Source: Mizuhopecten yessoensis (taxonomy: Eukaryota). Taken from it: DNA of 64,000 bases. Position numbers and translations under genes: made by a program. The stretch spans positions 809,938-873,937 of the forward strand of contig NW_018407426.1 of the NCBI RefSeq assembly GCF_002113885.1. The letters are read 5' to 3'. The notes beneath the pieces are model-generated. The model did no database searches, was not told the origin of the DNA, and was given only the letters and a program-made list of their open reading frames with translations. Positions 447 through 60,249 of the stretch are shown piece by piece (within the stretch, counting starts at the first letter, position 1; every line of letters begins with the position of its first letter).

Positions 447-1456
447 TTTGAAAACACAGATGAAAGACGACAGAAGACACACTATGACAAATGCTCATTT
501 GACTATTTTGGTCAAAGAGCCATAGAAGGTAAAAAACACAAGATTAAAACTTTAACAAATATTTTGGTAACCATGGTTACTAAAGACTGAGCTAACCATA
601 TAACATTTGGTTGTCATGACAACTAGATGCCAATTACTCACCAATGTTGCCCTAGCTGGTATTAAAAAGACAGAAATATTAGATTTCAAATTAGTCAATA
701 CAAAAACAGGTATTAGTAGGACTTAATTAAAATCAGTGTGTGCCTAGCTGGTTCTGGACGCACACCACAAATCATGTAACACCCCTAGGCCTGTAATGTT
801 ATATAGTAGGTTATATACAGCAGAAATATGGGTCAGTGAGTTAGATGGAATGGAGATTGGACTAGACGTCCTCAAACTTCACCAGTCTCTGTCCAGGCCT
901 GCACAGGATCGTGAAACAATCTTAAAATGAGCCAAACTTTCAATTACGGATATAATCCTATCTGAGATGAGCAGATAAAGTATTTCTATACGATATGTGC
1001 ATGTATTTAGTCTGTACAGTCACAATCTCATACAACACAAACATTTAAACAGCTTTTTGAGCTTGGACTAAAGGTTAAATACAACCTTGTATATTTGTAC
1101 CTGAAATTGGTCTTAGAGTTGACGCCCTTATACAATTTTTTAATTAAGAACTTCCTGAGCATTTTTAATTATTCTTTGGTAATAATGTGTGATCAATAAA
1201 TCCAAAACATTACATGCATTTATAAAGACATAATGTTAACATTTAGAAATTAGATCGGAACTCTTTTGTAATGAGGATACATATTACAGTAAGGTAACAT
1301 ACATCCTTAATTCTTCATAACCTGAGGCCTGTGTGGCAGGAGCTGAGTTTTAGTTTGAGGACTGATGTGTTTAGTCTAGTAGTGTTTAGTTGTACAACTA
1401 CGATATGAGAGTGTGAAGACAGCATGCCCGTGCATATATATGGTGATCAGTTATAC

Positions 1457-1548
1457 CTGTAGACGATTGTGTCGCTTAATGTACGACATCGTCTTTCTCT
1501 CTGCATCCACTAGTTGTTGCTGTAGGCGGGAGATCTGCTGGAAATTAT
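1457..1548 (-). CDS. ARMC9: ARMC9 coding exon 7 (DNFQQISRLQQQLVDAERKTMSYIKRHNRLQ); gene continues beyond the left edge
   Basis: ttgtcag acceptor, gtataa donor, 92 nt, phase 1 to 0, fitting the 28-nt micro-exon. Resembles vertebrate ARMC9 [25 protein letters not shown] (recalled). Confidence 0.9.
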
Positions 1549-2018
1549 CTGACAAAGACATATTATAGATATACGTTCCATTATCATACACACAGCAGGA
1601 AGACCTAGGACTCCATCAGTCTTGCCATCATCATTTCACATGTACAATGGACCATGTTATCACGGAGCTTATTAAAACAAGTATGGTAAAACTGATTTAA
1701 ACGGCATTAGGACCATGTCTGGTAATAAGCCCATCTATATATGTTGCAGTTCAGTAGGATTTTCAAGCCATTTCATATTGCCCATCCCCTGCTTGGAGTC
1801 AGAAATCATGTGTTTGTCCCAAGTTGAAAGCAGGATATATATGTAACACTATATATGGAAGATTTGTATAGCAGAAAACATTTTCATATGCATATTATAC
1901 ATGTATTATAAATTATATAGAGAAAAGTTGCGTCATAAAAGTGTATCTGCTCACTGGCAATTTTTTTGTTTTGATTCACGCAATCGTAATTGGTCATTGC
2001 CACTAACAAGATATGGGA

Positions 2019-2109
2019 TTAACTCATTCACCCATGAAATTTCATAATGAACTATTCCAACCTTAGAATTGGAAGAGTTCAAATGTGTCTTCAGGGGTAA
2101 CTGAGTTAA
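2019..2109. mobile_element. Tiny TTAA-flanked MITE (family 2)
   Basis: TTAA-CTCATTCACCC ... GGGGTAACTGAG-TTAA: imperfect terminal inverted repeats, about 83 bp between the TTAA sites. Confidence 0.55.
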
Positions 2110-2549
2110 GACAACAGCTGCTGAGTCAGTGCTGACATTGCTGAACCAGAAGGAATAACAAGATTCTGCGTAGTGACATGATATTATAGGTTATTTGGCT
2201 TCATGAAATTCAGACAAAGAAAGTCATATTTAAGTTTGTGACTTAAAATAGATTGGGCATTAAATCTTTCAGTACTTTATATTCATTTTATCATGATCTC
2301 AGAAATGAGCGAAACACACTCTTATTGATGCCACACGGTTCAGTGGTATACAGAAAAAATTAATTAGAAATGTTTACTTTGGCTAAGATTTAAGTGAAAC
2401 CACAAGTACTTTTAACTGATAAGCCACTTCTCCCCCCATTTTTACGAGAGATAGGGGGGGGGCGGGGGGGGCATCAATACAAACACCCTATGATAAAGAT
2501 GCCATTTTTGTCAAAGAGAGTGAAGCTGAATTATGAGTTTTTCATATTT

Positions 2550-2640
2550 TTAACCCTTTAACCACTTTAGACCATGATGGACTCATCCAGATGAATGTAT
2601 GGTAGAGTCTACTAAAGTTACCTAGGGGTGAAAGGGTTAA
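2550..2640. mobile_element. 83-bp TTAA-flanked piggyBac-type MITE (family 1)
   Basis: TTAA|CCCTTT ... AAAGGG|TTAA. A reverse-orientation copy of the same length lies at 63725-63807. Confidence 0.7.
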
Positions 2641-2694
2641 TTAACCAATTAAGTCACTCAGAGACCATGACATTCAACCAAAATGATAACTCAC

Positions 2695-2722
2695 CATCGT
2701 CATCTCCATCTTTGTTGCCTCG
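2695..2722 (-). CDS. ARMC9: ARMC9 coding exon 6, 28-nt micro-exon (RGNKDGDDD + G)
   Basis: gtaaacag acceptor preceded by a U12 branch point TTCCTTAAT; gtgagt donor. Its phase 0 to 1 is exactly what is needed to join exons 5 and 7. Confidence 0.85.
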
Positions 2723-2917
2723 CTGTTTACATTATTATTAAGGAATATATCCATAAAACAATAAATATCATACATGGATACAATTTCTACTACCGGTTAA
2801 TGTAATCAGCTTAAAAAATCTTTGCTAGTAAATACATCCAAAATAAATTATCAATTCATTCATGCATGTCTTTTTACAGATAAAACATGACAGTGTACCA
2901 TAAATCACCAAGGATAC
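2723..2917 (-). other. ARMC9: U12-type (minor spliceosome) GT-AG intron, 195 nt
   Basis: 5' splice site GTATCCTT (2917-2910), branch point TTCCTTAAT (2745-2737) about 15 nt from the AG, and no polypyrimidine tract. Confidence 0.9.
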
Positions 2918-3010
2918 ATATAGATCAAACAGTTTGGGTTGTGGAGTTGATTTCAGGGTTAATGTGAGAAACTTCTCAAGTCTGTTCTCTAGATCCTTAA
3001 TCCACGCATC
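2918..3010 (-). CDS. ARMC9: ARMC9 coding exon 5 (DAWIKDLENRLEKFLTLTLKSTPQPKLFDLY)
   Basis: ttttccag acceptor, 93 nt, phase 0/0. Resembles vertebrate [31 protein letters not shown] (recalled). Confidence 0.9.
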
Positions 3011-3787
3011 CTGGAAAACAGACAAAAACCTCAGAGTAACTTTGCAACTGGCAGTCATCTTAATTTAACAGAAAGCCTTTTCATAATTTTCATACACATC
3101 TGAATTCTCTTATTAACAAGACGACAATGGGCCTTAACTTGAATGAAATTATGAATGATACACATAAGGTTGTTGAGTAGATCTAACTTCATATGGATAT
3201 AAGTTCAATGGGGAAAATGGGTACTTAAGTTGACTTCAGTGATTATGTCAAATGTTGGTCTAAATCTACAGGTATTCCAAACAAAAGTTGTTTGAAAGTT
3301 TGTACTAAGTGACCCCTATGAGCACACTCTACTGAGGGGGGGGGGGGGGGGGGGGGGNAGTATAAATTCTGATCAACATCATCTAAAGAGGAGATGTATT
3401 TTGAAGGTTTTGCAATAAGTGAAGCCCTATGAGCACCTTGGGTTGGATTGGGGGTATCAGCCCCTTCTTAAGGGTAAATGCTGATCTTCATGATACACTA
3501 AGTCCAGAGAAGACATTAATGCTGTTTGTTATGTTCTGAAACTATCATATTCATATCATTTAGCCTGTAGGCTACACAGCCAAAATGGAACAATGAAAAT
3601 CTTGTACCTGTTGTTGGGAACAACATATTTAAATCAAATTTCTGCTTTCATTCTATTTCTTTCACCAAATACATAACAGTATCTAGATACAATATATACT
3701 GTCCATCATACAAATGTTTTCTCGTCATGAGAAAACAGATTATTACATACTTCCAAATATTTTTTTTCGAACCACTTTCAATTTGTA

Positions 3788-4215
3788 TACTGTATAAGCA
3801 CTTTAAATTCGCGGGGTCGATATTTCACTCTTTCGAATTTGCAGGGGTTAAATTTCGCTGTGCACCAGAATCCTATTTATTATGCAGAGTATTTTTTGAG
3901 TGTCATCATTTAAGGGTTAAACCTCGAAATGCAGGTAAACCGATTGCAAACACTGATCATAAATATGATGTGGCCACTTATATGTAAGTGTTGTTTTTAC
4001 ATGGACTGCCCAGTTGCCCGGTGATAAATCTGATTTTAGTTCATTTAAGCTTGCATAACAGCATTGGGTTATAAGTGTTTTCAACATGTTGTGATAAGGT
4101 CTGCAAAAGTGGTTAACATTTTTGATAACTTTGCTGGTGTTCAGAATTTGTGGATATTAGTCAAAGCGTGAATATTGCGAAATTAAACCCCCCACAAAAT
4201 ATAACCGCTCATAAC
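3788..4215. mobile_element. Degenerate TACTGTA-type MITE in an ARMC9 intron
   Basis: Left end TACTGTATAAGCACTTTAAATTCGCGGGGT; loosely complementary right end GCGAAATTAAACCCCCCACAAAATATAACCGCTCATA; internal TTTCGC/GCGAAA motifs. Confidence 0.4.
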
Positions 4216-4308
4216 GCTTAAAAGGAAGAAAATAAAAGTTTATACTTCACAGTCAGAACCTTTTAAAACGTATCAATTTTGGAATCGGTCAGTAGTCAAT
4301 CTACGTAC

Positions 4309-4458
4309 TGTAAAGAGTTCTTTATAAGAGGGATGACTCTTGGCATTAGGTACAAACGGAAGGGCGTAGAATGGGAGAAACTCAGTCGTCTGGCTTAGAG
4401 AGGCACCACGGTTCTCCAAGTACTTCTTAAAGTCTGTCATACAGCGGTCACCTTCTCT
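4309..4458 (-). CDS. ARMC9: ARMC9 coding exon 4 (REGDRC...[33 protein letters not shown])
   Basis: Contains the diagnostic ARMC9 motif [18 protein letters not shown]. ttcag/gtacgt boundaries, 150 nt. Confidence 0.95.
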
Positions 4459-5231
4459 CTGAATAGACATGAGAACTTCTATGATATAACTACTGTAAAT
4501 TATTTACGCTTCACAATGTATTTATTTTGGAGTAAATTTGTTAATAGCAGAGCAGAAAGCAAATTGAAACATATCTTGAATATTTGACTAAAAACTAAAG
4601 TAACGATATACATGTATATACTAGTTTTTCTTCATTTCAGAAATAACAACAAAATAAGTATTGTGAAAATTCATTAATTTAGACCATATAAGAGTAATTG
4701 AATCAACTTCAGCTCTCCTGTCCATTCTCTTATCATCCATCTATATATTTATATGCACCATCTTCAACTACAGCATCCCAAACCATGTTTTAAAAGTAAG
4801 ATTGGTTCCAACAATTTTAAAATCCTATTTTTAATGTAATAAAAAAAATAAAGACATTTTTCATCACTTATCTTAACTGTTGTTATTTGGGGGGTTTTCA
4901 TTACTATATAAGGGAATGCAACAATTTTATTTTATTCAAAGATTGAAATAATGTTCTGTTTAGTCTGTTTCGAAAAAAAACACATCTTTGATACAGATCA
5001 GTGCATCCTTTATATTAGATTTATCTTAAACCAATTTATCACAATTCAATGGTACATAATTTTCATATATAAATTGAACTAGTGCTATATGGACTAAAAA
5101 ATGTTGAATAACTATTTTTCTGATTAGGAAATTTTCATTCTAGAGTTAAAACATTAATTAGTTTAATGAAAGCATTACTTTTTACAAATCATAATGTGGT
5201 TATCAAAGTAATTCATCTACTGTGAACTCAC

Positions 5232-5399
5232 CTGTCCCCTGCCAAACTTTATAGGATAAATAGCAAAGTAAATGTTGAGATAAAATTCAAGCTTCTTTGC
5301 TACAGCATCTGAATCTCTGACGTTTGGGGGCAGGTGCTCATTCCAAAGTTTGAAGCAGCGGTCACGCTTGCCTTTGTGGAACTGCTGCATAAGGTCATT
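5232..5399 (-). CDS. ARMC9: ARMC9 coding exon 3 (NDLMQQFHKGKRDRCFKLWNEHLPPNVRDSDAVAKKLEFYLNIYFAIYPIKFGRGQ)
   Basis: ttgtag/gtgagt boundaries, 168 nt, phase 0/0. KLEFYLxIxFAIY motif of ARMC9. This frame is not in the supplied ORF track. Confidence 0.93.
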
Positions 5400-6005
5400 C
5401 TACAACACCAGATAATGACAGTTCTTACAATTATGACACCAGAATGAAGACATTTATCATGATACCATGATGTTGCATAGAAGACAGGCATGAAGTCTAA
5501 CTTGTAATTCAGAAGACTTGATGATGATCTGGGAGGAAATATTCTTTTTACAAACATTTGCATACATTTTCTCTGTGTTTGATCTTAATGGCAGACCTAT
5601 AGACAAACACCAAGAAAAAACTATTGTCTGTAAAGTGCTAAACACGACTGTGAAATAATTGCCATTTCACATAATAATTAATTAACTTGAAATCTTAGGA
5701 TTTCATCCTATCTCGAATATCCCAAATTATTTTCATTTTTTGTTTTTTAAATACAGACAGGCGAATGGCTTGGACAGTTGGTGTTTTTTTTTATCATACT
5801 GTTCCAATTCAGCGACACAATGTTTCCACAGCAGTGTTCTCACTAAAGTTTAGATTTGGGGGTATATTTGATACATTTTCGAGATTTTGTACTCATAGGT
5901 AGCCAGTTACATAGGGTAGTTGTTGAAAACTAGGGGTACAACTACCTGTTTTGAGGGTTTCTGGGAACCCGCTACAGTACCCCAATATGTAAGACTGAGT
6001 GTTAC

Positions 6006-6131
6006 CTGAATGGCCAGGAGCTTTTGGTTGGATTTAGACTTGATACTGTGGGATGTAACAGGTTTTTTCTTTTGGTCACATTCTTTCTGGAAAGTTGACA
6101 ATGTTCGATCAAATCCTCCGAAGTCCAAAAA
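6006..6131 (-). CDS. ARMC9: ARMC9 coding exon 2 (FLDFGGFDRTLSTFQKECDQKKKP...LLAIQ), LisH motif
   Basis: ttttcag/gtaaca boundaries, 126 nt. Completes the LisH motif LNAIVQE-FLDFGGFDRTLSTFQKEC. Confidence 0.93.
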
Positions 6132-6636
6132 CTGAAAAGAAACAAGTCACAAATTGTTACGTAGGGAATTTTAGAGTATTTGATTGTCACTGTTCAAACT
6201 TCAGTGGTTTTTACAATAATATTTTCAAATCAAACTTTTGGAATATATCTATACCTGTATTACATGAATTTAGTATAATACCAGGTAGATTAAACATCGT
6301 TCTAAACTTTTGTTATTAGAACTTATAACTATTTTCTTGAATTGGCTGATGAATTTAAACAATAATTTTATTTTTTAAACTTTATCATTTAATTTCCTCT
6401 CAATCCTTAAGATATCAGAAAAACAAGAAAAAAGCATTAGAAAATACCTTCCAAACAACACCAAAAGCCAGAACAATTGACATGTAATAATATTTGCATA
6501 ATATCATTGGCATTGTCTACGTTTGAGGATCAACTCAAAAATCACAAATTAGACACAGCAGCAAAGATGAATGTCTTAAACTTGTCCTTAGCATTTATGT
6601 TTAATTTAAACCCTAACCTAAAATTATTGATAATAC

Positions 6637-6696
6637 CTCTTGAACAATGGCATTGAGTTCCCCCTCAAAAGACACAACAGATAACGACCCAGACAT
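6637..6696 (-). CDS. ARMC9: ARMC9 first coding exon (MSGSLSVVSFEGELNAIVQE)
   Basis: ATG at 6696, gtatta donor, 60 nt. An acceptor (ttttgcag) ending at 6724 implies an upstream non-coding exon. Confidence 0.88.
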
Positions 6697-28374: not shown

Positions 28375-30143
28375 CGCTGTCCGTTTTGGTATTGCCGTTC
28401 ACCTTGACCTCCGTCTTCTCCTCGTCAGGTTGGATATTCAACGACATTTGGTGCAAAATTCAAGGATTCATCTTTAGTGTGTGTGTGTTCTCCATACAGT
28501 TTTCCTTGATGGTTATCTCCCTTGACAGGAATTATGCCATTATAAACTCGCTTCGTTATGTGAATGTCTTTACACAGAAACTTGCTAATATACTGATAGC
28601 CATGTGCTGGTTGTTGAGTGTAGTGTTAGCGTCTCTGCCGTTGTTAAACTGGGGTTCGTATGACTACATACCAAACCAATACACGTGTGCAATAAACTGG
28701 GAGGTGTCTAGTGAGTTTCTCACCACAGTGTGTATATTAGTATTCCTTCTCCCTCTCCTTGTCCAGGCAATCTGCTATCTGAGCATTTTCAAAGCGGCGA
28801 TCAGCCACACAAAACGGTCGAGTCGAGTGTATCCTTCAATGCAAACGAGTTCTATTAGAGGACTTACAAGTTCGGTCCAAGATCCGCCGAGTGATTCATC
28901 GGATATTAGTGACGTTTCACAAAACGTTCAGGTGAAATATCAAAATATGGAGTGCAAGGCAGTGCGAACGATCCTGCTGATTGCTTTTACATATGCTATT
29001 TGTTGGGTTCCATATATGACGGTGTCGTTTTTAAGGCTCAGATCAGTCACCATAGTGTCCTACAGCGATTCGCTCGCTGTCTGTTTTCTCTTCCTGACTG
29101 GGGTAATCAACCCTGTTATATATGTATTCATGAATAGGGTAATGCGATTCGAGATAAATAAGTTTTTCTGTGGACCTAGTGGGAGAGATTCGAGAAAATC
29201 AAGCTCTGGCGATGACAACGATGACTTCTATTCAACGACGACGATGAGTGTATCGATACCAAAGACAACGACGACATCGTCCTCTTCGAACAGTTGTCAA
29301 ACTAGGTCAGGCGGAAAGAGCAGGAGGATAGAAATGAAAACTATAAAAGAAGAGGAGGTAGAACTAGAAAATGTTTTCAAACCCGGTCAATTCCCTAAAA
29401 AGGCGGAAAACCCGTCGGAAGAAATTGTAAAGGTTTCCGTGGATAAAGAGGAACAAAAACCAGAATTATTTCTGAACCCTACTGATTTATATCTTCAGAG
29501 AAAACGGATACGAACAAAGCGTGAGCGGATGATGTCTATACGCGAGGAGGCGTCAATACCTATCCAGGAGACACTCGAATCTCCTGAATGGCAGTACTTA
29601 GAGGACTTGGACCTGGCATGGAATCCTGCCATCTCGAAAGATTCACAGATTCAGTACAGACGTCGTCGATCGCGAATAAATTCCTTAGGGGCCAGGAAAG
29701 ACGAAACATTTTCTAGGAAAAATCGAGATAGTGGATCATTCCTGTATTTTGAACATTTTAGTCCAAGCAAGGGACAACATGGACAGAATCGCCGATCAGG
29801 GCGCGGCCTATCGGTCGATGAAGCATTATTTAGGTTCGACAATTTTCCTCGGAGTAAACAAAACAGACATCACAGCCTCTATGAGGGTATGCAAACTTCG
29901 ATAACTGTACCAATGCCAGATTTAGAATCCTGTCGTCCACACGTTTCTGATCACGCACAAAACGGTAATGCCGGTTCTTCGGTCGAGTTAGGTCGAGAAT
30001 GCAATACTGGTTCAGATCCTGAACTCAACCGGAAGACACCGTCAACATCAAATCACGTGACACAGACATCAATCAAAGATGGTAACTCAACGCATCTTAT
30101 ACATGTGTCTCCACAACCAAAGCGAAATTGTTTGTCTGCTTAA
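28375..30143 (+). CDS. GPR161-like class A GPCR, coding exon 2 (TM2-TM7 and long C-tail), copy 1; spliced product 658 aa
   Basis: Acceptor ttttgtccag; phase 1 joins exon 1 to give SELALSVLVLPF. Motifs WIFxxxWC, DRN(Y), CWVPY, NPVIY; ECKAVRTIL resembles GPR161 QCKALITIL. AATAAA at 30173-30178. Confidence 0.9.
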
Positions 30144-38850: not shown

Positions 38851-40619
38851 CGCTGTCCGTTTTGGTATTGCCGTTCACCTTGACCTCCGTCTTCTCCTCG
38901 TCAGGTTGGATATTCAACGACATTTGGTGCAAAATTCAAGGATTCATCTTTAGTGTGTGTGTGTTCTCCATACAGTTTTCCTTGATGGTTATCTCCCTTG
39001 ACAGGAATTATGCCATTATAAACTCGCTTCGTTATGTGAATGTCTTTACACAGAAACTTGCTAATATACTGATAGCCATGTGCTGGTTGTTGAGTGTAGT
39101 GTTAGCGTCTCTGCCGTTGTTAAACTGGGGTTCGTATGACTACATACCAAACCAATACACGTGTGCAATAAACTGGGAGGTGTCTAGTGAGTTTCTCACC
39201 ACAGTGTGTATATTAGTATTCCTTCTCCCTCTCCTTGTCCAGGCAATCTGCTATCTGAGCATTTTCAAAGCGGCGATCAGCCACACAAAACGGTCGAGTC
39301 GAGTGTATCCTTCAATGCAAACGAGTTCTATTAGAGGACTTACAAGTTCGGTCCAAGATCCGCCGAGTGATTCATCGGATATTAGTGACGTTTCACAAAA
39401 CGTTCAGGTGAAATATCAAAATATGGAGTGCAAGGCAGTGCGAACGATCCTGCTGATTGCTTTTACATATGCTATTTGTTGGGTTCCATATATGACGGTG
39501 TCGTTTTTAAGGCTCAGATCAGTCACCATAGTGTCCTACAGCGATTCGCTCGCTGTCTGTTTTCTCTTCCTGACTGGGGTAATCAACCCTGTTATATATG
39601 TATTCATGAATAGGGTAATGCGATTCGAGATAAATAAGTTTTTCTGTGGACCTAGTGGGAGAGATTCGAGAAAATCAAGCTCTGGCGATGACAACGATGA
39701 CTTCTATTCAACGACGACGATGAGTGTATCGATACCAAAGACAACGACGACATCGTCCTCTTCGAACAGTTGTCAAACTAGGTCAGGCGGAAAGAGCAGG
39801 AGGATAGAAATGAAAACTATAAAAGAAGAGGAGGTAGAACTAGAAAATGTTTTCAAACCCGGTCAATTCCCTAAAAAGGCGGAAAACCCGTCGGAAGAAA
39901 TTGTAAAGGTTTCCGTGGATAAAGAGGAACAAAAACCAGAATTATTTCTGAACCCTACTGATTTATATCTTCAGAGAAAACGGATACGAACAAAGCGTGA
40001 GCGGATGATGTCTATACGCGAGGAGGCGTCAATACCTATCCAGGAGACACTCGAATCTCCTGAATGGCAGTACTTAGAGGACTTGGACCTGGCATGGAAT
40101 CCTGCCATCTCGAAAGATTCACAGATTCAGTACAGACGTCGTCGATCGCGAATAAATTCCTTAGGGGCCAGGAAAGACGAAACATTTTCTAGGAAAAATC
40201 GAGATAGTGGATCATTCCTGTATTTTGAACATTTTAGTCCAAGCAAGGGACAACATGGACAGAATCGCCGATCAGGGCGCGGCCTATCGGTCGATGAAGC
40301 ATTATTTAGGTTCGACAATTTTCCTCGGAGTAAACAAAACAGACATCACAGCCTCTATGAGGGTATGCAAACTTCGATAACTGTACCAATGCCAGATTTA
40401 GAATCCTGTCGTCCACACGTTTCTGATCACGCACAAAACGGTAATGCCGGTTCTTCGGTCGAGTTAGGTCGAGAATGCAATACTGGTTCAGATCCTGAAC
40501 TCAACCGGAAGACACCGTCAACATCAAATCACGTGACACAGACATCAATCAAAGATGGTAACTCAACGCATCTTATACATGTGTCTCCACAACCAAAGCG
40601 AAATTGTTTGTCTGCTTAA
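38851..40619 (+). CDS. GPR161-like GPCR coding exon 2, copy 2
   Basis: Same translation as 28375-30143. Confidence 0.87.
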
Positions 40620-51445: not shown

Positions 51446-51914
51446 TCATGAACATTGATGCGGTGATTCTGTTGTACACTTTAGTGTTGGGACTACTATA
51501 CGGCTATAACATAACACTTTGGTTGTTTCATGTTACCTTTATGCTCTGATCTATAAGGAGATTACGCAGTATATAAAGTTACGATACCATATAATATCGG
51601 TTCCAGTTTTAATCCGCTTCTCAACCACGTATACTATGTATAGACAAACAACAAAGCCCTTTAGGCTAATCGTCATCGGCAGAGAATTGTCAAGAATCAG
51701 TCAGCAATCTACCTGCGGGCTGATTAGTCCCCGGTGATCATCCTGAATTACGTATGGACATGTTACAGCGATCTTCAATAACAAGGGTCGGATCAATTTT
51801 ATATTATTTCATTTTCGTGCAGCCTAGAGATGATATCTGATCAATATCCATTGGTGTGTGTATCGTTTGATGTTTTCTGTTAACGCATACAATGAAGGGA
51901 GAAATTCAGAGTGT

Positions 51915-54900
51915 GGTGTTGTTTTTTGTTGTCATAAGTGGTGATATGATATTTTTTTCGTATAATGTTGTGTTGTTTTCGTTGTCACAAGTGAGGATAT
52001 GAGGTGTTAAGCGTGTATTGTTGTATTGTGTTTGTTGTCACATGTGGGGATATGAGATGTTTAGCGTGTATTGTTGTATTGGTTTTGTTGTCACGTGTGG
52101 AGATATGAGATGTTTAGCGTGTATTGTTGTGTTGTTTTTGTTGTCATGTGTAGGGATATGAGATGTTTGTCGTGTATTGTCGTGTTGTTTTTGTACATGT
52201 GGGGATATGAGATGTTTAGCGTATATTGTTGTGTTGTTTTTGTTTTCACATGTAGGGATATGAGATGTTTAGTGTGTATTGTTGTATTGTGTTTGTTGTC
52301 ACATGTGGGGTTGTGTTATGTTTAGCGTATATTGTTGTGTTGTTTTTGTTTTCACATGTAGGGATATGAGATGTTTAGTGTGTATTATTGTGTTGGTTTT
52401 GTTGTCACGGGTGGGGATATGAGATGTTTAGTGTGTATTGTTGTATTGGTTTTGTTGTCACGTGTGGGGATATGAGATGTTTAGCGTGTATTGTTGTGTT
52501 GTTTTTGTTGTCACGTGTAGGGATATGAGATGTTTAGCGTGTATTGTTGTGTTGGTTTTGTTGTCACACGGGGAATATGACATGTTAAGCGTGTATTGTT
52601 GTCACGTATGGGGATATGAGATGTTTAGCGTGTATTGTTGTATTGTGTTTGTTGTCACGTGTGGGGATATGAGCTGTTTAGCGTGTATTGTCGTGTTGTG
52701 TTTGTTGTCACATGTGGGGATATGAGATGTTTAGCGTATATTGTCGTGTTGTGTTTGTTGTGTCATGTGGGGATATGAGATGTTTGGTGTGTATTGTTGT
52801 GTTGCTTTTGTTGTCATGTGTGGGGATATGAGATGTTAAGCGTATATTGTTGTGTTGTTTTTGTTGTCATGTGTAGGGATATGAGATGTTTGTCGTGTAT
52901 TGTCGTGTTGTTTTTGTTGCCACGTGTTGGGATATGAGATGTTTAGCGTATATTGTCGTGTTGTGTTTGTTGTCACCTGTGGGAATATGAGATGTTTAGC
53001 GTATATTGTCGTGTTGTATTTGTTGTGTCATGTGGGGATATGAGATGTTTGGTGGGTATTGTTGTGTTGCTTTTGTTTTCATGTGTGGGGATATGAGATG
53101 TTAAGCGTATATTGTTGTGTTGTTTTTGTTGTCATGTGTAGGGATATGAGATGTTTGTCGTGTATTGTCGTGTTGTTTTTGTTGTCACGTGTGGGGATAT
53201 GAGATGTTTGTCATGTATTGTTGTTTTTGATGTTGTTGTTACATGTAGGGATACGAGATGTTTGTCGTATATTGTTGTGTTGTTTTTGTTGTCACGTGTA
53301 GGAATATGAGATGTTTGTCGTGTATTGTCGTGTTGTTTTTGTTGTCACGTGTTGGGATATGAGATGTTTAGTGTGTATTGTTGTGTTGGTTTTGTTGTCA
53401 CGTGTGGGGATATGAGATGTTTAGTGTGTATTGTTGTATTGGTTTTGTTGTCACGTGTGGGGATATGAGATATTTAGCGTGTATTGTTGTGTTGTTTTTG
53501 TTGTCACGTGTGGGGATATGAGATGTTTGTAGTGTTTATTGTTGTGTTGGTTTTGTTGTTACACGGAGAATATGACATGTTAAGCGTGTATTGTTGTCAC
53601 GTATGGGGATATGAGATGTTTAGCGTGTATTGTTGTATTGTGTTTGTTGTCACATGTGGGGATATGAGATCTTTAGTGTATATTCTTGTGTTGTTTTTGT
53701 TTTCATATGTAGGGATATGAGATGTTTAGTGTGTATTATTGTGTTGTTTTCTTGTCACGTGTGGGGATATGAGATGTTTAGTGTGTATTGTTGTATTGGT
53801 TTTGTTGTCACGTGTGGGGATATGAGATGTTTAGCGTATATTGTCGTGTTGTGTTTGTTGTGTCATGTGGGGATATGAGATGTTTGGTGTGTATTGTTGT
53901 GTTGCTTTTGTTGTCATGTGTGGGGATATGAGATGTTAAGCGTATATTGTTGTGTTGTTTTTGTTGTCACGTGTAGGGATATGAGATGTTTGTCGTGTAT
54001 TGTCGTGTTGTTTTTGTTGTCACGTGTGGGGATATGAGATGTTTAGTGTGTATTGTTGTATTGGTTTTGTTGTCACGTGTGGGGATATGAGATATTTAGC
54101 GTGTATTGTTGTGTTGTTTTTGTTGTCACGTGTGGGGATATGAGATGTTTAGTGTGTATTGTTGTGTTGGTTTTGTTGTCACGTGTGGGGATATGAGATG
54201 TTTAGTGTGTATTGTTGTATTGGTTTTGTTGTCACGTGTGGGGATATGAGATGTTTAGCGTGTATTGTTGTGTTGTTTTTGTTGTCACGTGTAGGGATAT
54301 GAGATGTTTAGCGTGTATTGTTGTGTTGGTTTTGTTGTCACACGGGGAATATGACATGTTAAGCGTGTATTGTTGTCACGTATGGGGATATGAGATGTTT
54401 AGCGTTTATTGTTGTATTGTGTTTGTTGTCACGTGTGGGGATATGAGATGTTTAGCGTGTATTGTCGTGTTGTGTTTGTTGTCACATGTGGGGATATGAG
54501 ATGTTTAGCGTGTATTGTTGTATTGTGTTTGTTGTCACATGTGGGAATATGAGATGTTTAGCGTATATTGTCGTGTTGTGTTTGTTGTGTCATGTGGGGA
54601 TATGAGATGTTTGGTGTGTATTGTTGTGTTGCTTTTGTTGTCATGTGTGGGGATATGAGATGTTAAGCGTATATTGTTGTGTTGTTTTTGTTGTCATGTG
54701 TGGGGATATGAGATGTTTGTCATGTATTGTCGTGTTGTTTTTGTTGTCATGTGTGGGGTATGAGATGTTTGTCATGTATTGTTGTTTTTGATGTTGTTGT
54801 TACATGTAGGGATACGAGATGTTGGTCGTATATTGTTGTGTTGTTTTTGTTGTCACGTGTAGGAATATGAGATGTTTGTCGTGTATTGTCGTGTTGATTT

Positions 54901-57900
54901 TGTTGTCATGTGTGGGGATATGAGATGTTAAGCGTATATTGTTGTGTTGTTTTTGTTGTCATGTGTAGGGATATGAGATGTTTGTCGTGTATTGTCGTGT
55001 TGTTTTTGTTGTCACATGTTGGGATATGAGATTTTTAGTGTGTATTGTTGTGTTGGTTTTGTTGTCACGTGTGGGGATATGAAATGTTTAGTGTGTATTG
55101 TTGTATTTGTTTTGTTGTCACGTGTGGGGATATGAGATGTTTAGCGTGTATTGTTGTGTTGTTTTTGTTGTCACGTGTAGGGATATGAGATGTTTAGTGT
55201 GTATTGTTGTGTTGGTTTTTTTGTCACACGGGGAATATGACATGTTAAGCGTGTATTGTTGTCAAGGATGGGGATATGATATCTTTAGATGTTTAGCGTG
55301 TATTGTTGTATTGTGTTTGTTGTCACATGTTGGAATATGAGATGTTTAGCGTATATTGTCGTGTTGTGTTTGTTGTGTCTTGTGGGGGTATGAGATGTTT
55401 GTCATGTATTGTTGTTTTTGATGTTGTTGTGTCACGTATGGGGATATGATATGTTTAGTGTGTATTGTGGTATTGGTTTTGTTGTCACTTGTGGGGATAT
55501 GATATGTTTAGTGTGTATTGTGGTATTGGTTTTGTTGTCACGTGTTGGGATATGAGATGGTTAGTGTGTATTGTTGTGTTGGATTTGTTGTAACACGGGG
55601 AATATGACATGTTAAGAGTGTATTGTTGTCAAGGATGGGGATATGATATGTTTAGTGTGTATTGTGGTATTGGTTTTGTTGTCACTAGTGGGGGTATGTG
55701 ATGTTTAGCGTGTATTGATGTGTTGTTTTTGTTGTCATGTGTAGGGATATGAGATGTTTGTCATGTATTGTCGTGTTGTTTTTTTTGTCATGTGTCGGGA
55801 TATGAGATGTTTAGTGTGTATTGTTGTATTGGTTTTGTTGTCACTAGTGGGGATATGAGATGTTTAGCGTGTATTGTTGTGTTGTTTTTGTTGTCACGTG
55901 TGGGGATATGAGATGTTTAGTGTGTATTGTTGTGTTGGATTTGTTGTCACACGGGGAATATGACATGTTAAGCGTGTATTGTTGTCACGTATGGGGATAT
56001 GATATGTTTAGCGTATATTGTTGTATTGTGTTTGTTGTCACATGTGAGGATATGAGATGTTTAGCGTATATTGTTGTGTTGTTTTTGTTTTCACATGTAG
56101 GGATATGAGATGTTTAGTGTGTATTATTGTGTTGGTTTTGTCGTCACGTGTGGGGATATGAGATGTTTAGTGTGTATTGTTGTATTGGTTTTGTTGTCAC
56201 GTGTGGGAATATGAGATGTTTGTCGTGTATTGTCGTGTTGTTTTTGTTGTCAGGTATGGGGATATGAGATGTTTAGCGTGTATTGTTGTGTTGTTTTTAT
56301 TGTCAGGTGTGGGGATATGAGATGTTTGTCGCGTATTGTTGTATTGTGTTTGTTGTCAAGGAGGGGGATATGAGATGTTTGTCGTGTGTTGTCGTGTTGG
56401 TTTTGTTGTCACATGTGGGGATATGAGATATTTAGCGTATATTGTTGTGTTGTGTTTGTTGTATCGTGTGGGGATATACGATGTTTATCGTGTGGTTTTT
56501 GATGTCACATGTGGGGATATGAGATGTTTGTCGCGTATTGTTGTATTGTGTTTGTTGTCGCGTATGTGGATATGAGATGTTTGTCGTGTATTGTCGTGTT
56601 GGTTTTGGTGTATCGTGTGGGGATATACGATGTTTGTCGTGTTGTTATTGTTGTCACATGTAGGGATATGAGATGTATGTCGTGTATTGTTGTGTAGTTT
56701 TTGTTGTCACGTGTAGGGATATGAGATGTTTGTCGTGTATTGTTGTGTAGTTTTTGTTGTCAGGGATGGGGATATGAGGTGTTTGTCGTGTTGTTTTTGT
56801 TGTCACGTGTGGGGATATGAGATGTTTAGCGTGTATTAATGTGTTGGTTTTGTTGTCACGTGTGGGGATATGAGATATTTAGCGTGTATTGTTGTGTTGT
56901 TTTTGTTGTCACGTGTAGGGATATGAGATGTTTAGCGTTCATTGTTGTGTTGGTTTTGTTGTCACACGGGGAATATGACATGTTAAGCGTGTATTGTTGT
57001 CACGTATGGGGATATGAGATGTTTAGCGTGTATTGTTGTATTGTGTTTGTTGTCACGTGTGGGGATATGAGCTGTTTAGCGTGTATTGTCGTGTTGTGTT
57101 TGTTGTCACCTGTGGGGATATGAGTTGTTTAGCGTGTTTTGTTGTATTGTGTTTGTTGTCACATGTGGGAATATGAGATGTTTAGCGTATGTTGTCGTGT
57201 TGTTTTTGTTGCTACCTGTGGAAATATGAGATGTTTAGCGTATATTGTCGTGTTGTATTTGTTGTGGGGATATGAGATGTTAAGCGTATATTGTTGTAGA
57301 TGTTTAGCGTATGTTGTCGTGTTGTGTTTGGTTTTTGATGTTGTTGTTACATGTAGGGATACGAGATGTTTGTCGTATATTGTTGTGTTGTTTTTGTTGT
57401 CACGTGTAGGGATATGAGATGTTTGTCGTGTATTGTTGTGTAGTTTTTGGGGATATGAGATGTTTAGCGTGTATTGTTGTATTGTGTTTGTTGTCACATG
57501 TGGGAATATGAGATGTTTAGCGTATGTTGTCGTGTTGTGTTTGTTGCTACCTGTGGAAATATGAGATGTTTAGCGTATATTGTCGTGTTGTATTTGTTGT
57601 GTCATGTGGGGATATGAGATGTTTGGTGGGTATTGTTGTGTTGCTTTTGTTTTCATGTGTGGGGATATGAGATGTTAAGCGTATATTGTTGTGTTGTTTT
57701 TGTTGTCATGTGTGGGGTATGAGATGTTTGTTATGTATTGTTGTTTTTGATGTTGTTGTTACATGTAGGGATACGAGATGTTTGTCGTATATTGCTGTGT
57801 TCTTGTTGTCACGTGTAGGAATATGAGATGTTTGTCGTGTATTGTCGTTTTGTTTTTGTTGTCATGTGTGGGGATATGAGATGTTAAGCGTATATTGTTG

Positions 57901-59375
57901 TGTTGTTTTTGTTGTCATGTGTAGGGATATGAGATGTTTGTCGTGTATTGTCGTGGTGTTTTTGTTGTCACGTGTTGGGATATGAGATGTTTAGTGTGTA
58001 TTGTTGTGTTTGTTTTGTTGTCACGTGTAGGGATATGAGACGTTTGGTTTGTATTTTTGTTATGTTTTTGATGACACGTGTAGGGATATGAGATGTTTGT
58101 CGTGTATTATCGTGTTGTTTTTGTTGTCACGTGTTGGGATATGAGATGTTTAGGGTGTATTGTTGTGTAGTTTTTGTTGTCAGGTGTAGGGATATGAGGT
58201 GTTTGTCGTGTTGTTTTTGTTGTCACGTGTGAGGATATGAGATGTTAAGCGTATATTGTCGTGTTGTGTTTGTTGTCACCAGTGGGAATATGAGATGTTT
58301 AGCGTATATTGTCGTGTTGTGTTTGTTGTCACCAGTGGGAATATGAGATGTTTAGCGTATATTGTCGTGTTGTATTTGTTGTGTCATGTGGGGATATGAG
58401 ATGTTTGGTGGGTATTGTTGTGTTGCTTTTGTTTTCATGTGTGGGGATATGAGATGTTAAGCGTATATTGCTGTGTTGTTTTTGTTGTCATGTGTAGGGA
58501 TATGAGATGTTTGTCGTGTATTATCGTGTTGTTTTTGTTGTCACGTGTTGGGATATGTGATGTTTAGTGTGTATTGTTGTGTTTGTTTTGTTGTCACGTG
58601 TGGGGATATGAGATGTTTAGTGTGTATTGTTGTGTTTGTTTTGTTGTCACGTGTTGGGATATGAGATGTTTAGTGTGTATTGTTTTGTTGGTTTTGTTGT
58701 CACGTGTAGGGATATGAGATGTTTAGTGTGTATTGTTGTGTAGTTTTTGTTGTCAGGTGTAGGGATATGAGGTGTTTGTCGTGTTGTTTTTGTTGTCACG
58801 TGTGAGGATATGAGATGTTAAGCGTATATTGTCGTGTTGTGTTTGTTGTGTCATGTGGGGATATGAGATGTTTGTCGTGTATTGTTGTGTTGTTTTTGTT
58901 GTCAGGTGTGGGGATATGAGATGTTTGTCGCGTATTGTTGTATTGTGTTTGTTTTCACGTATGGGGAAATGAGATGTTTGTCGTGTATTGTCGTGTTGGT
59001 TTTGTTGTATCGTGGGGGGATATACGATGTTTATCGTGTTGTTTTTGTTGTCACATGTGGGGATATGAGATGTTTGTCGCGTATTGTTGCATTGTGTTTG
59101 TTGTCGCGTATGGGGATATGAGATGTTTGTCGTGTATTGTCGTGTTGGTTTTGTTGTATCGTGTGGGGATATACGATGTTTGTCGGGTTGTTATTGTTGT
59201 CACATGTAGGGATATGAGATGTATGTCGTGTATTGTTGTGTAGTTTTTGTTGTCAGGTGTGGGGATATGAGGTGTTTGTCGTGTTGTTTTTGTTGTCACG
59301 TGTGAGGATATGAGATGTTCAGTGCGTATTGTTGTTTTTGATTTTGTTTTTATATGTAAGGTTGTGAGATGTTTA
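51915..59375. repeat. ~7.4-kb GT-rich satellite, 53-bp unit, roughly 140 copies, with higher-order blocks
   Basis: Consensus GTCACGTGTGGGGATATGAGATGTTTAGCGTGTATTGTTGTGTTGTTTTTGTT. A shorter variant GTCACACGGGGAATATGACATGTTAAGCGTGTATTGTT recurs through the array. Confidence 0.95.
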
Positions 59376-60249
59376 GCAGGCCCGGGTATGTTATATGTTT
59401 AACAGAGGTCATTATTTTGTCAATGCCTCCGCTAGAAGACGAGAATCTCCCTAGCTGTGTCGGTAGGAAGCGGCTAATATTTTACCAGGGTGACATAGGT
59501 GCTATACATATACTATATAGGCTATGAATAACTCTCACTGTTGTCGACGTCATACCATTAGTCCACGACTACTATTGACGTATCTATGGATGTTTTATAT
59601 AGGCTATAAATATGTTATAGGATATTTTATATGGTATCAGAGGGGGTTGCACAAAATATTAAACTTAGAAAAAGACAGATTTTTGCACTTATCCGGTACT
59701 AATATATTAAAATGTTAATGGCTGTTCTGAATGTATACTAATTTCTGTCAACAAAAATCTAGAACATTTTGGCAATTTAATATTAATTTATTTTGTCATA
59801 AATATGAATTATGATTGAACTATTTGTCTTATATTCAACAAGGGCAACACCGGTCTTACAAATAATTAAGTATTTATTTTAAAAACATTTCTAATGAAAA
59901 GGATGTACACGCCAAGCTTTTATGCTAACATTGGTTATAAGTCACCTGATGAAGTGATGATAAGGAGGATGCTTCATTGTCTTTGAAATTTTTGAAATAT
60001 ATCTTTTTAATTGGTATAATTTATCACTCCTAATGACCATGTGCACTTGAAACCACAGGTGAAAATACATGTCACATCAAAGGTAGGGTCTATTTCATCA
60101 TAGATACTATTTCTATTTCTATGTAACTCGAGTTTGATCAGGATTTCAATTTTTTAAGATACAAAGTTTACCGACTGTCTTTTACAATTTGAAAATTAAC
60201 TAAATAATACACATTAGTTTTATGGATAACACAATCCAGATTCCACTGG

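Follow-up and report, generated by a model that had tools for sequence, protein, structure and literature searches.

Intron 2917..2723 of the ARMC9 gene of the Yesso scallop, Mizuhopecten yessoensis, is very probably a genuine U12-type (minor-spliceosome) GT-AG intron, belonging to an inherited architecture in which it directly precedes a constitutive micro-exon of 28 nt. The gene is read from the minus strand of the window, that is the whole stretch of 64,000 nucleotides analysed here. The intron is the orthologue of a minor intron already catalogued, and available gene models already include the micro-exon. The sole mildly new point is that the size of the micro-exon is conserved across animals and in a chytrid.

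The ARMC9 gene and its transcripts

The gene is ARMC9. Searched exon by exon against Pfam, it was found to encode the ARMC9-specific LisH (PF21051) and CTLH-like (PF23138) domains; the window does not reach the C-terminal ARM part. Comparison of a 50-residue exon with a representative protein library returned full-length ARMC9 proteins, the best being P0001, an ARMC9-like protein of Ylistrum balloti. A word search from P0001 listed P0177, 'LisH domain-containing protein ARMC9 [Mizuhopecten yessoensis]', in which the exon translations are found exact and contiguous at residues 4, 46, 102, 152, 183 and 193. The gene name given in the earlier note is thus borne out by both Pfam families and by the exact match to P0177. 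The ARMC9 features of the window, all on the minus strand, are the following.

6637..6696, minus strand: coding exon 1 (MSGSLSVVSFEGELNAIVQE), then GTATTA; from the open reading frame, with which the Ylistrum and Pecten proteins agree at their N-termini
6006..6133, minus strand: coding exon 2, LisH motif; joint 5399^6006 and contigs, Pfam PF21051 ARMC9_LisH, E 1.3e-6
5232..5399, minus strand: coding exon 3, part one of the CTLH-like domain; RNA joints, Pfam PF23138 CTLH_Armc9, E 4.9e-18
4309..4458, minus strand: coding exon 4, part two of the CTLH-like domain; RNA joints, Pfam PF23138, E 5.5e-20
2918..3010, minus strand: coding exon 5, 93 nt, ending ...LFDLY in phase 0; joints 3010^4309 and 2918^2722
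2723..2917, minus strand: U12-type GT-AG intron, 195 nt, phase 0; sequence and RNA joint 2722^2918
2910..2917, minus strand: U12-type 5′ splice site GTATCCTT; sequence, matching RTATCCTT
2737..2745, minus strand: U12-type branch site TTCCTTAAT, branch A at 2738; sequence, matching TTCCTTRAY
2695..2722, minus strand: 28-nt micro-exon, RGNKDGDDD plus one base; both flanking RNA joints, residues present in P0177
1549..2694, minus strand: U2-type intron GTGAGT...CAG, 1146 nt, with repeat elements; joint 1548^2695
1457..1548, minus strand: coding exon 7, 92 nt, ending ...RHNRLQ; contig pieces and frames
536..686, minus strand, approximate: next ARMC9 exon (DYHNLIG...); blastn match to the Ylistrum gene only

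The P0177 protein starts with MVHFLDFGG and does not include the first coding exon, MSGSLSVVSFEGELNAIVQE, which is seen in the window, in Ylistrum and in Pecten; nor does it have a LisH match in Pfam. Judging from these sequences, the N-terminus of the deposited model seems wrong.

RNA was compared with positions 1300-6300 of the window, a stretch that leaves coding exon 1 (6637..6696) outside. Two contig sets, X1 (study P1) and X8 (an RNA library of study P5), and two raw-read runs, X24 (poly(A) RNA of study P13) and X19, were used. The joint 2722^2918, which skips 195 nt with GT..AG termini on the minus strand, was observed in an X1 contig, in an X8 contig and in 9 raw reads of X24 with 6 different starts. 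The joint 1548^2695, which skips 1146 nt, is carried by the same X1 and X8 contigs and by 7 raw reads of X24. Both junctions that the earlier note had proposed to look for in RNA (2918^2722 and 2695^1548) are thus seen in three studies; few raw reads back them (9 and 7, one run), X19 being almost without cover of ARMC9. The X8 contig, 1386 nt long, spans six exons (6133..6006, 5399..5232, 4458..4309, 3010..2918, 2722..2695 and 1548..1457). No joint skipping the micro-exon was found in X1, X8, X24 or X19, the last of which barely covers the gene, and no competing joint at the U12-type intron or at the micro-exon occurs in X1, X8 and X24. A variant at 2717 (G>T on the plus strand), present in X8 and in 6/11 X24 reads, is synonymous within the micro-exon (GGC -> GGA).

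As regards retention of the intron, the depth of X24 in the bin 2803..2969 is about that expected from its 52 exon bases, a rough estimate at low depth. Since the exon bases explain this depth, the U12-type intron is not strongly retained in X24. Another X8 contig, 2635..2788, still carries unspliced intron sequence to either side of the micro-exon; its depth is 3.6, whereas the spliced contig reaches 57.6, and it may derive from pre-mRNA or from DNA.

The micro-exon (2722..2695), within the limit of 30 nt taken for such exons, is entered in phase 0 and left in phase 1, after an upstream exon whose last bases on the minus strand are ...CTATAT at 2918. The spliced model was joined by script for frame checks. 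If the micro-exon is omitted, a stop is reached after 12 codons, in agreement with the earlier claim that it is needed to keep the frame; if the U12-type intron is retained, a stop comes after 31 codons. A second acceptor, TTTCCAG|CAG, is found at 1538/1537 on the minus strand, 11 nt inside the exon 1457..1548. On paper, skipping of the micro-exon combined with the use of this acceptor (28 + 11 = 39 nt) would remain in frame with the loss of 13 residues. Zero reads or contigs in the four runs use acceptor 1537.

The window also contains repeats, two of which are located within the 1146-nt ARMC9 intron. One is a 91-bp MITE-like element at 2550-2640 with 17-nt terminal inverted repeats (TTAACCCTTTAACCACT / AGGGGTGAAAGGGTTAA), on which the depth of reads and contigs reaches ~1e5, with loose ends at 2640/2641; this pile-up indicates a very abundant, transcribed repeat family in the scallop. 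The other, of ~90 nt at 2019-2109, is also very abundant (depth ~4e5 in the contig runs, hundreds in the raw reads); it varies at several positions, and its loose ends, at 2018/2019 and 2098/2109, are sharp. Far from the gene, at 51912-59377, a 7.5-kb satellite array is made of ~144 copies of a 53-bp unit (76-80% match). The array is strongly G+T-rich on the plus strand, which accounts for the GC skew of ~0.7 and the AT skew of ~-0.49 at 52-60 kb. Finally, the plus strand carries TTCCTTGAT together with GTATCCTT twice, at 28502-28836 and at 38978-39312, two places 10,476 bp apart, with a spacing of 327 nt in both copies, which points to a duplicated segment or a dispersed repeat. The pair was rejected as an intron because the branch-site-like motif is upstream of the donor-like motif. 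The Rfam scan of the whole window gave zero matches.

Minor-class signals and the minor spliceosome

On the minus strand the first bases of the intron read GTATCCTTGG (2917..2908), and the U12-type consensus RTATCCTT is found right at the exon border, as set by the RNA joint 2722^2918. The branch-site consensus TTCCTTRAY, expected ~10-20 nt upstream of the 3′ splice site, is matched by TTCCTTAAT. The AG occupies 2724..2723, and the branch A at 2738 (the second A of TTAAT) is 15 nt from its G. As read from the sequence, the bases separating the branch site from the AG, AATAATAATGTAAAC, are A-rich and include no pyrimidine tract. Directly 3′ of the micro-exon, on the same strand, a U2-type donor, GTGAGT, is present at 2694..2689. 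The earlier note had described a U12-type donor, a branch site about 15 nt before the AG, the absence of a polypyrimidine tract and a GTGAGT donor after the micro-exon; for the intron its coordinates and description were exact, and the downstream donor is where it was said to be. The four other ARMC9 introns of the window have U2 donors (GTAACA, GTGAGT, GTACGT and GTGAGT) and T-rich acceptors.

The assignment to the U12 class was made by consensus matching and background frequency. In the window, neither motif is enriched singly by comparison with shuffled sequence, RTATCCTT being observed 8 times for 5.0 expected and TTCCTTRAY 4 times for 3.0 expected. Hence, the case rests on their joint occurrence at one intron defined by RNA. 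As a background, GTATCCTT is found at 4/8344 GT sites and a TCCTTRAY branch site stands 9-21 nt before the AG at 9/6092 AG sites, so that the two together are expected at ~7e-7 per random GT..AG pair. Their presence together at one RNA-defined intron is not due to chance. The scallop ARMC9 intron shares every sequence hallmark of the canonical U12-type GT-AG introns. Its signals are in no way unusual: the branch site ends with T rather than C, giving a G-U pair with U12, and the sole less common trait is the 28-nt exon downstream.

The RNA components of the minor spliceosome were searched for in the scallop genome (988 Mb), with the Rfam gathering scores as cut-off. U12 (two copies, 109 bits), U11 (96 bits), U6atac (two copies, 94 and 91 bits) and U4atac (70 bits) all exceed this cut-off. 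The scallop U12 snRNA carries the box GUAAGGAA, complementary to the branch site TTCCTTAAT; its nucleotides 18-27, GUAAGGAAAA, pair with UUCCUUA, leaving the branch A bulged, with a G-U pair at the final U. The scallop U11 starts with AAAAAGGGCC and U6atac carries AAGGAGAGA.

Considering the motifs, these snRNAs and the established knowledge of U12 splicing, we infer that the intron 2917..2723 would be recognised and removed by the minor spliceosome. The U11/U12 di-snRNP would recognise the GTATCCTT donor and the TTCCTTAAT branch site together by base pairing (intron definition), a step for which a pyrimidine tract would not be needed. The U4atac/U6atac.U5 particle would then join, U6atac would replace U11 at the donor and the intron would be excised. 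Excision is exact, joining the ...LFDLY codon to the micro-exon, and removal of an ordinary U2-type intron links the latter to the 92-nt exon. As a conjecture, the downstream U2 intron might be removed first, thereby giving an exon of 120 nt, since an exon of 28 nt leaves little room for both of its ends to be occupied at once. It may also be imagined that it is the strong, base-paired branch site that permits recognition of so small an exon. Wu and Krainer reportedly described, in 1996, how a U12-type 3′ splice site and a U2-type donor downstream of it are coupled by exon definition. The scallop micro-exon resembles that system, being flanked by a U12 acceptor and a U2 donor (GTGAGT), but with 28 nt it is below the size usually thought to let both complexes bind together, which makes removal of the two introns in a set order more likely.

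Conservation and age of the intron and of the micro-exon

When the locus of another scallop, Ylistrum balloti (L006), is compared with the window by blastn, the exons alone align, with 82-88% identity. In this species, the donor TAT|GTATCCTTGG keeps its codon and phase; in the intron that it opens, 353 nt long, the branch site TTCCTTAAC is found 13 nt before the AG, and a 28-nt micro-exon and then GTGAGT follow. In the elephant shark, Callorhinchus milii (L013), the exon ends with ...LLSLY and is followed by the donor TAT|GTATCCTTAA, where the octamer GTATCCTT is kept. The best branch-site candidate of the shark, CTCTTTGAC, departs from the consensus at one position and stands 14 nt before the AG; the micro-exon, here of 25 nt (KDIVQGNR plus one base), is followed by GTAATG. 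In an alignment of 27 proteins, the intron follows one and the same column in the scallop and in the shark, with an identical phase. In the sea anemone Actinia tenebrosa (L095), TTTCCTTGAC is found 10 nt before the AG, ahead of a 28-nt micro-exon (KNGPDVLEK plus one base) and of GTACCG, and the protein reads ...KLFTLY|KNGPDVLEK. The Actinia contig starts inside the upstream intron and does not reach the donor; thus, the cnidarian case is made by the branch site and the protein.

The proposal that the intron is ancient therefore holds by position in Ylistrum and Callorhinchus, and by the branch site alone in Actinia. From these sequences, the U12-type intron and its micro-exon go back at least to the cnidarian-bilaterian ancestor. 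Another cnidarian, Hydra vulgaris (L012, GCA_038396675.1), has an intronless ARMC9 gene with one uninterrupted open frame of 775 codons: either all its introns were lost or the gene was replaced by a retrocopy. No RTATCCTY donor was found near the homologous site among 80 ARMC9 loci from metagenomes, mostly of protists. Since most of these loci have one open frame or introns elsewhere, they carry no information on the age of the U12-type intron. The sequences P0060, P0047, P0052, P0054 and P0058 were left out of the intron comparison, as they are transcript contigs without introns.

In a fungus, Chytridiales sp. JEL 0842 (L014, KAJ3411667.1), the ARMC9 gene model, which is a prediction, has a 28-nt exon (1231-1258) that goes from phase 0 to phase 1, followed by an intron, a 92-nt exon and a further intron before DYHNL. 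Both exons match those of the scallop in size and phase, whereas the intron upstream of the micro-exon is of the U2 type, with GTGAGT and a length of 74 nt. In the MAFFT alignment, this intron is placed three residues later than that of the scallop, within a poorly conserved stretch. Judged on exon sizes and phases, the layout of the micro-exon (28 + 92 nt) may date from the opisthokont ancestor. It is conceivable, and we would put it forward tentatively, as somewhat short of probable, that the U12-type intron and its micro-exon (28 nt, or 25 in vertebrates) form a pair of fixed size frozen before the cnidarian-bilaterian split, the layout itself coming from the animal-fungus ancestor. If this is true, the U2-type intron of the chytrid would represent a datable conversion of intron type beside a micro-exon, and there would be a hint that such a small exon becomes recognisable through the base pairing of the U12 branch site and not through a pyrimidine tract.

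As to known systems, the closest is the U12-type intron of vertebrate ARMC9, in the same gene family: in the shark, the GTATCCTT donor occurs at the same column and phase with a micro-exon next to it, and retention leads to a premature stop as in the scallop. The vertebrate case differs from the scallop by the size of the micro-exon (25 nt versus 28) and by that of the intron (732 nt in the shark versus 195). From the shark orthologue and from the human protein, the human ARMC9 U12 intron is probably this same intron. Human ARMC9 is named among the U12-intron genes linked to Joubert syndrome (PMC9992838, PMC7507305). When the minor spliceosome is impaired, the human ARMC9 transcript keeps its U12 intron, as seen after knock-out of DDX59 (PMC12095793) and, in human cells, with defects of DDX59 or U4atac (PMC9992838, PMC12095793). 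In view of this listing of human ARMC9 (PMC9992838, PMC7507305, PMC12095793), the earlier note overrated the novelty of the case. A literature search for ARMC9 paired with 'microexon' found no paper. The same note supposed that automated annotation could miss the micro-exon, but its residues are included in all the public models concerned, RGNKDGDDD being found at aa 183 of P0177, and the Ylistrum and Pecten maximus protein models including theirs.

Alternative readings and significance

Could the intron be an ordinary U2-type GT-AG intron, with U12-like motifs occurring by chance and removal by the major spliceosome? Its GT-AG termini would suit this idea, as would the absence of enrichment of either motif taken singly and the plainly U2-type intron (GTGAGT) at the corresponding place in the chytrid. 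However, a joint frequency of ~7e-7, together with the lack of a pyrimidine tract, makes a chance origin very improbable. Moreover, both scallops and the shark retain the donor octamer, and a scallop and an anemone the branch site, while the remaining intron sequence can no longer be aligned; all four minor snRNAs are also present in the genome. Even less credible is the view that the 28-nt exon is unreal and that the mRNA joins 2918 to the acceptor 1537, in frame and minus 13 residues. The in-frame acceptor TTTCCAG|CAG at 1538/1537 exists on paper, but the corresponding joint is seen in 0/4 runs whereas both joints of the micro-exon are observed in three studies, and the residues of the micro-exon occur in orthologous proteins with a conserved exon size. 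As the RNA joints show inclusion of the micro-exon, 2918^1537 is refuted as the main form of the mRNA.

A further idea is compatible with the U12 reading and would complement it. Slow U12 splicing, with retention of the intron or skipping of the micro-exon leading to NMD, would act as a regulatory switch setting the dose of ciliary ARMC9. In favour of such a switch, skipping and retention bring stops after 12 and 31 codons, respectively, the human ARMC9 U12 intron is retained with defective DDX59 or U4atac, and one X8 contig (2635..2788) is unspliced, at a depth of 3.6 versus 57.6 for the spliced form. However, zero skipping joints are listed in any run, the depth of the bin 2803..2969 indicates low retention in the poly(A) run X24, and the micro-exon is included in every gene model seen. 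As for the unspliced X8 contig, it keeps both introns, hence is not specific to the U12-type one, and could be DNA. Such a switch is therefore unlikely, and splicing-dependent control of ARMC9, though possible, is a guess of which the available reads bear no sign.

The finding that the scallop intron is of the U12 type matters little beyond confirmation, and no new question arises from it. What it contributes is a mollusc case of the minor intron catalogued for human ARMC9, a Joubert-syndrome cilia gene. It also shows that molluscs have the intron and its micro-exon in common with a cartilaginous fish and with a sea anemone. The comparison with the chytrid may offer a test case for the interconversion of U12 and U2 introns. 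In addition, the conserved micro-exon placed beside a U12 acceptor could be used as a natural example on which to study how very short exons are recognised without a pyrimidine tract.
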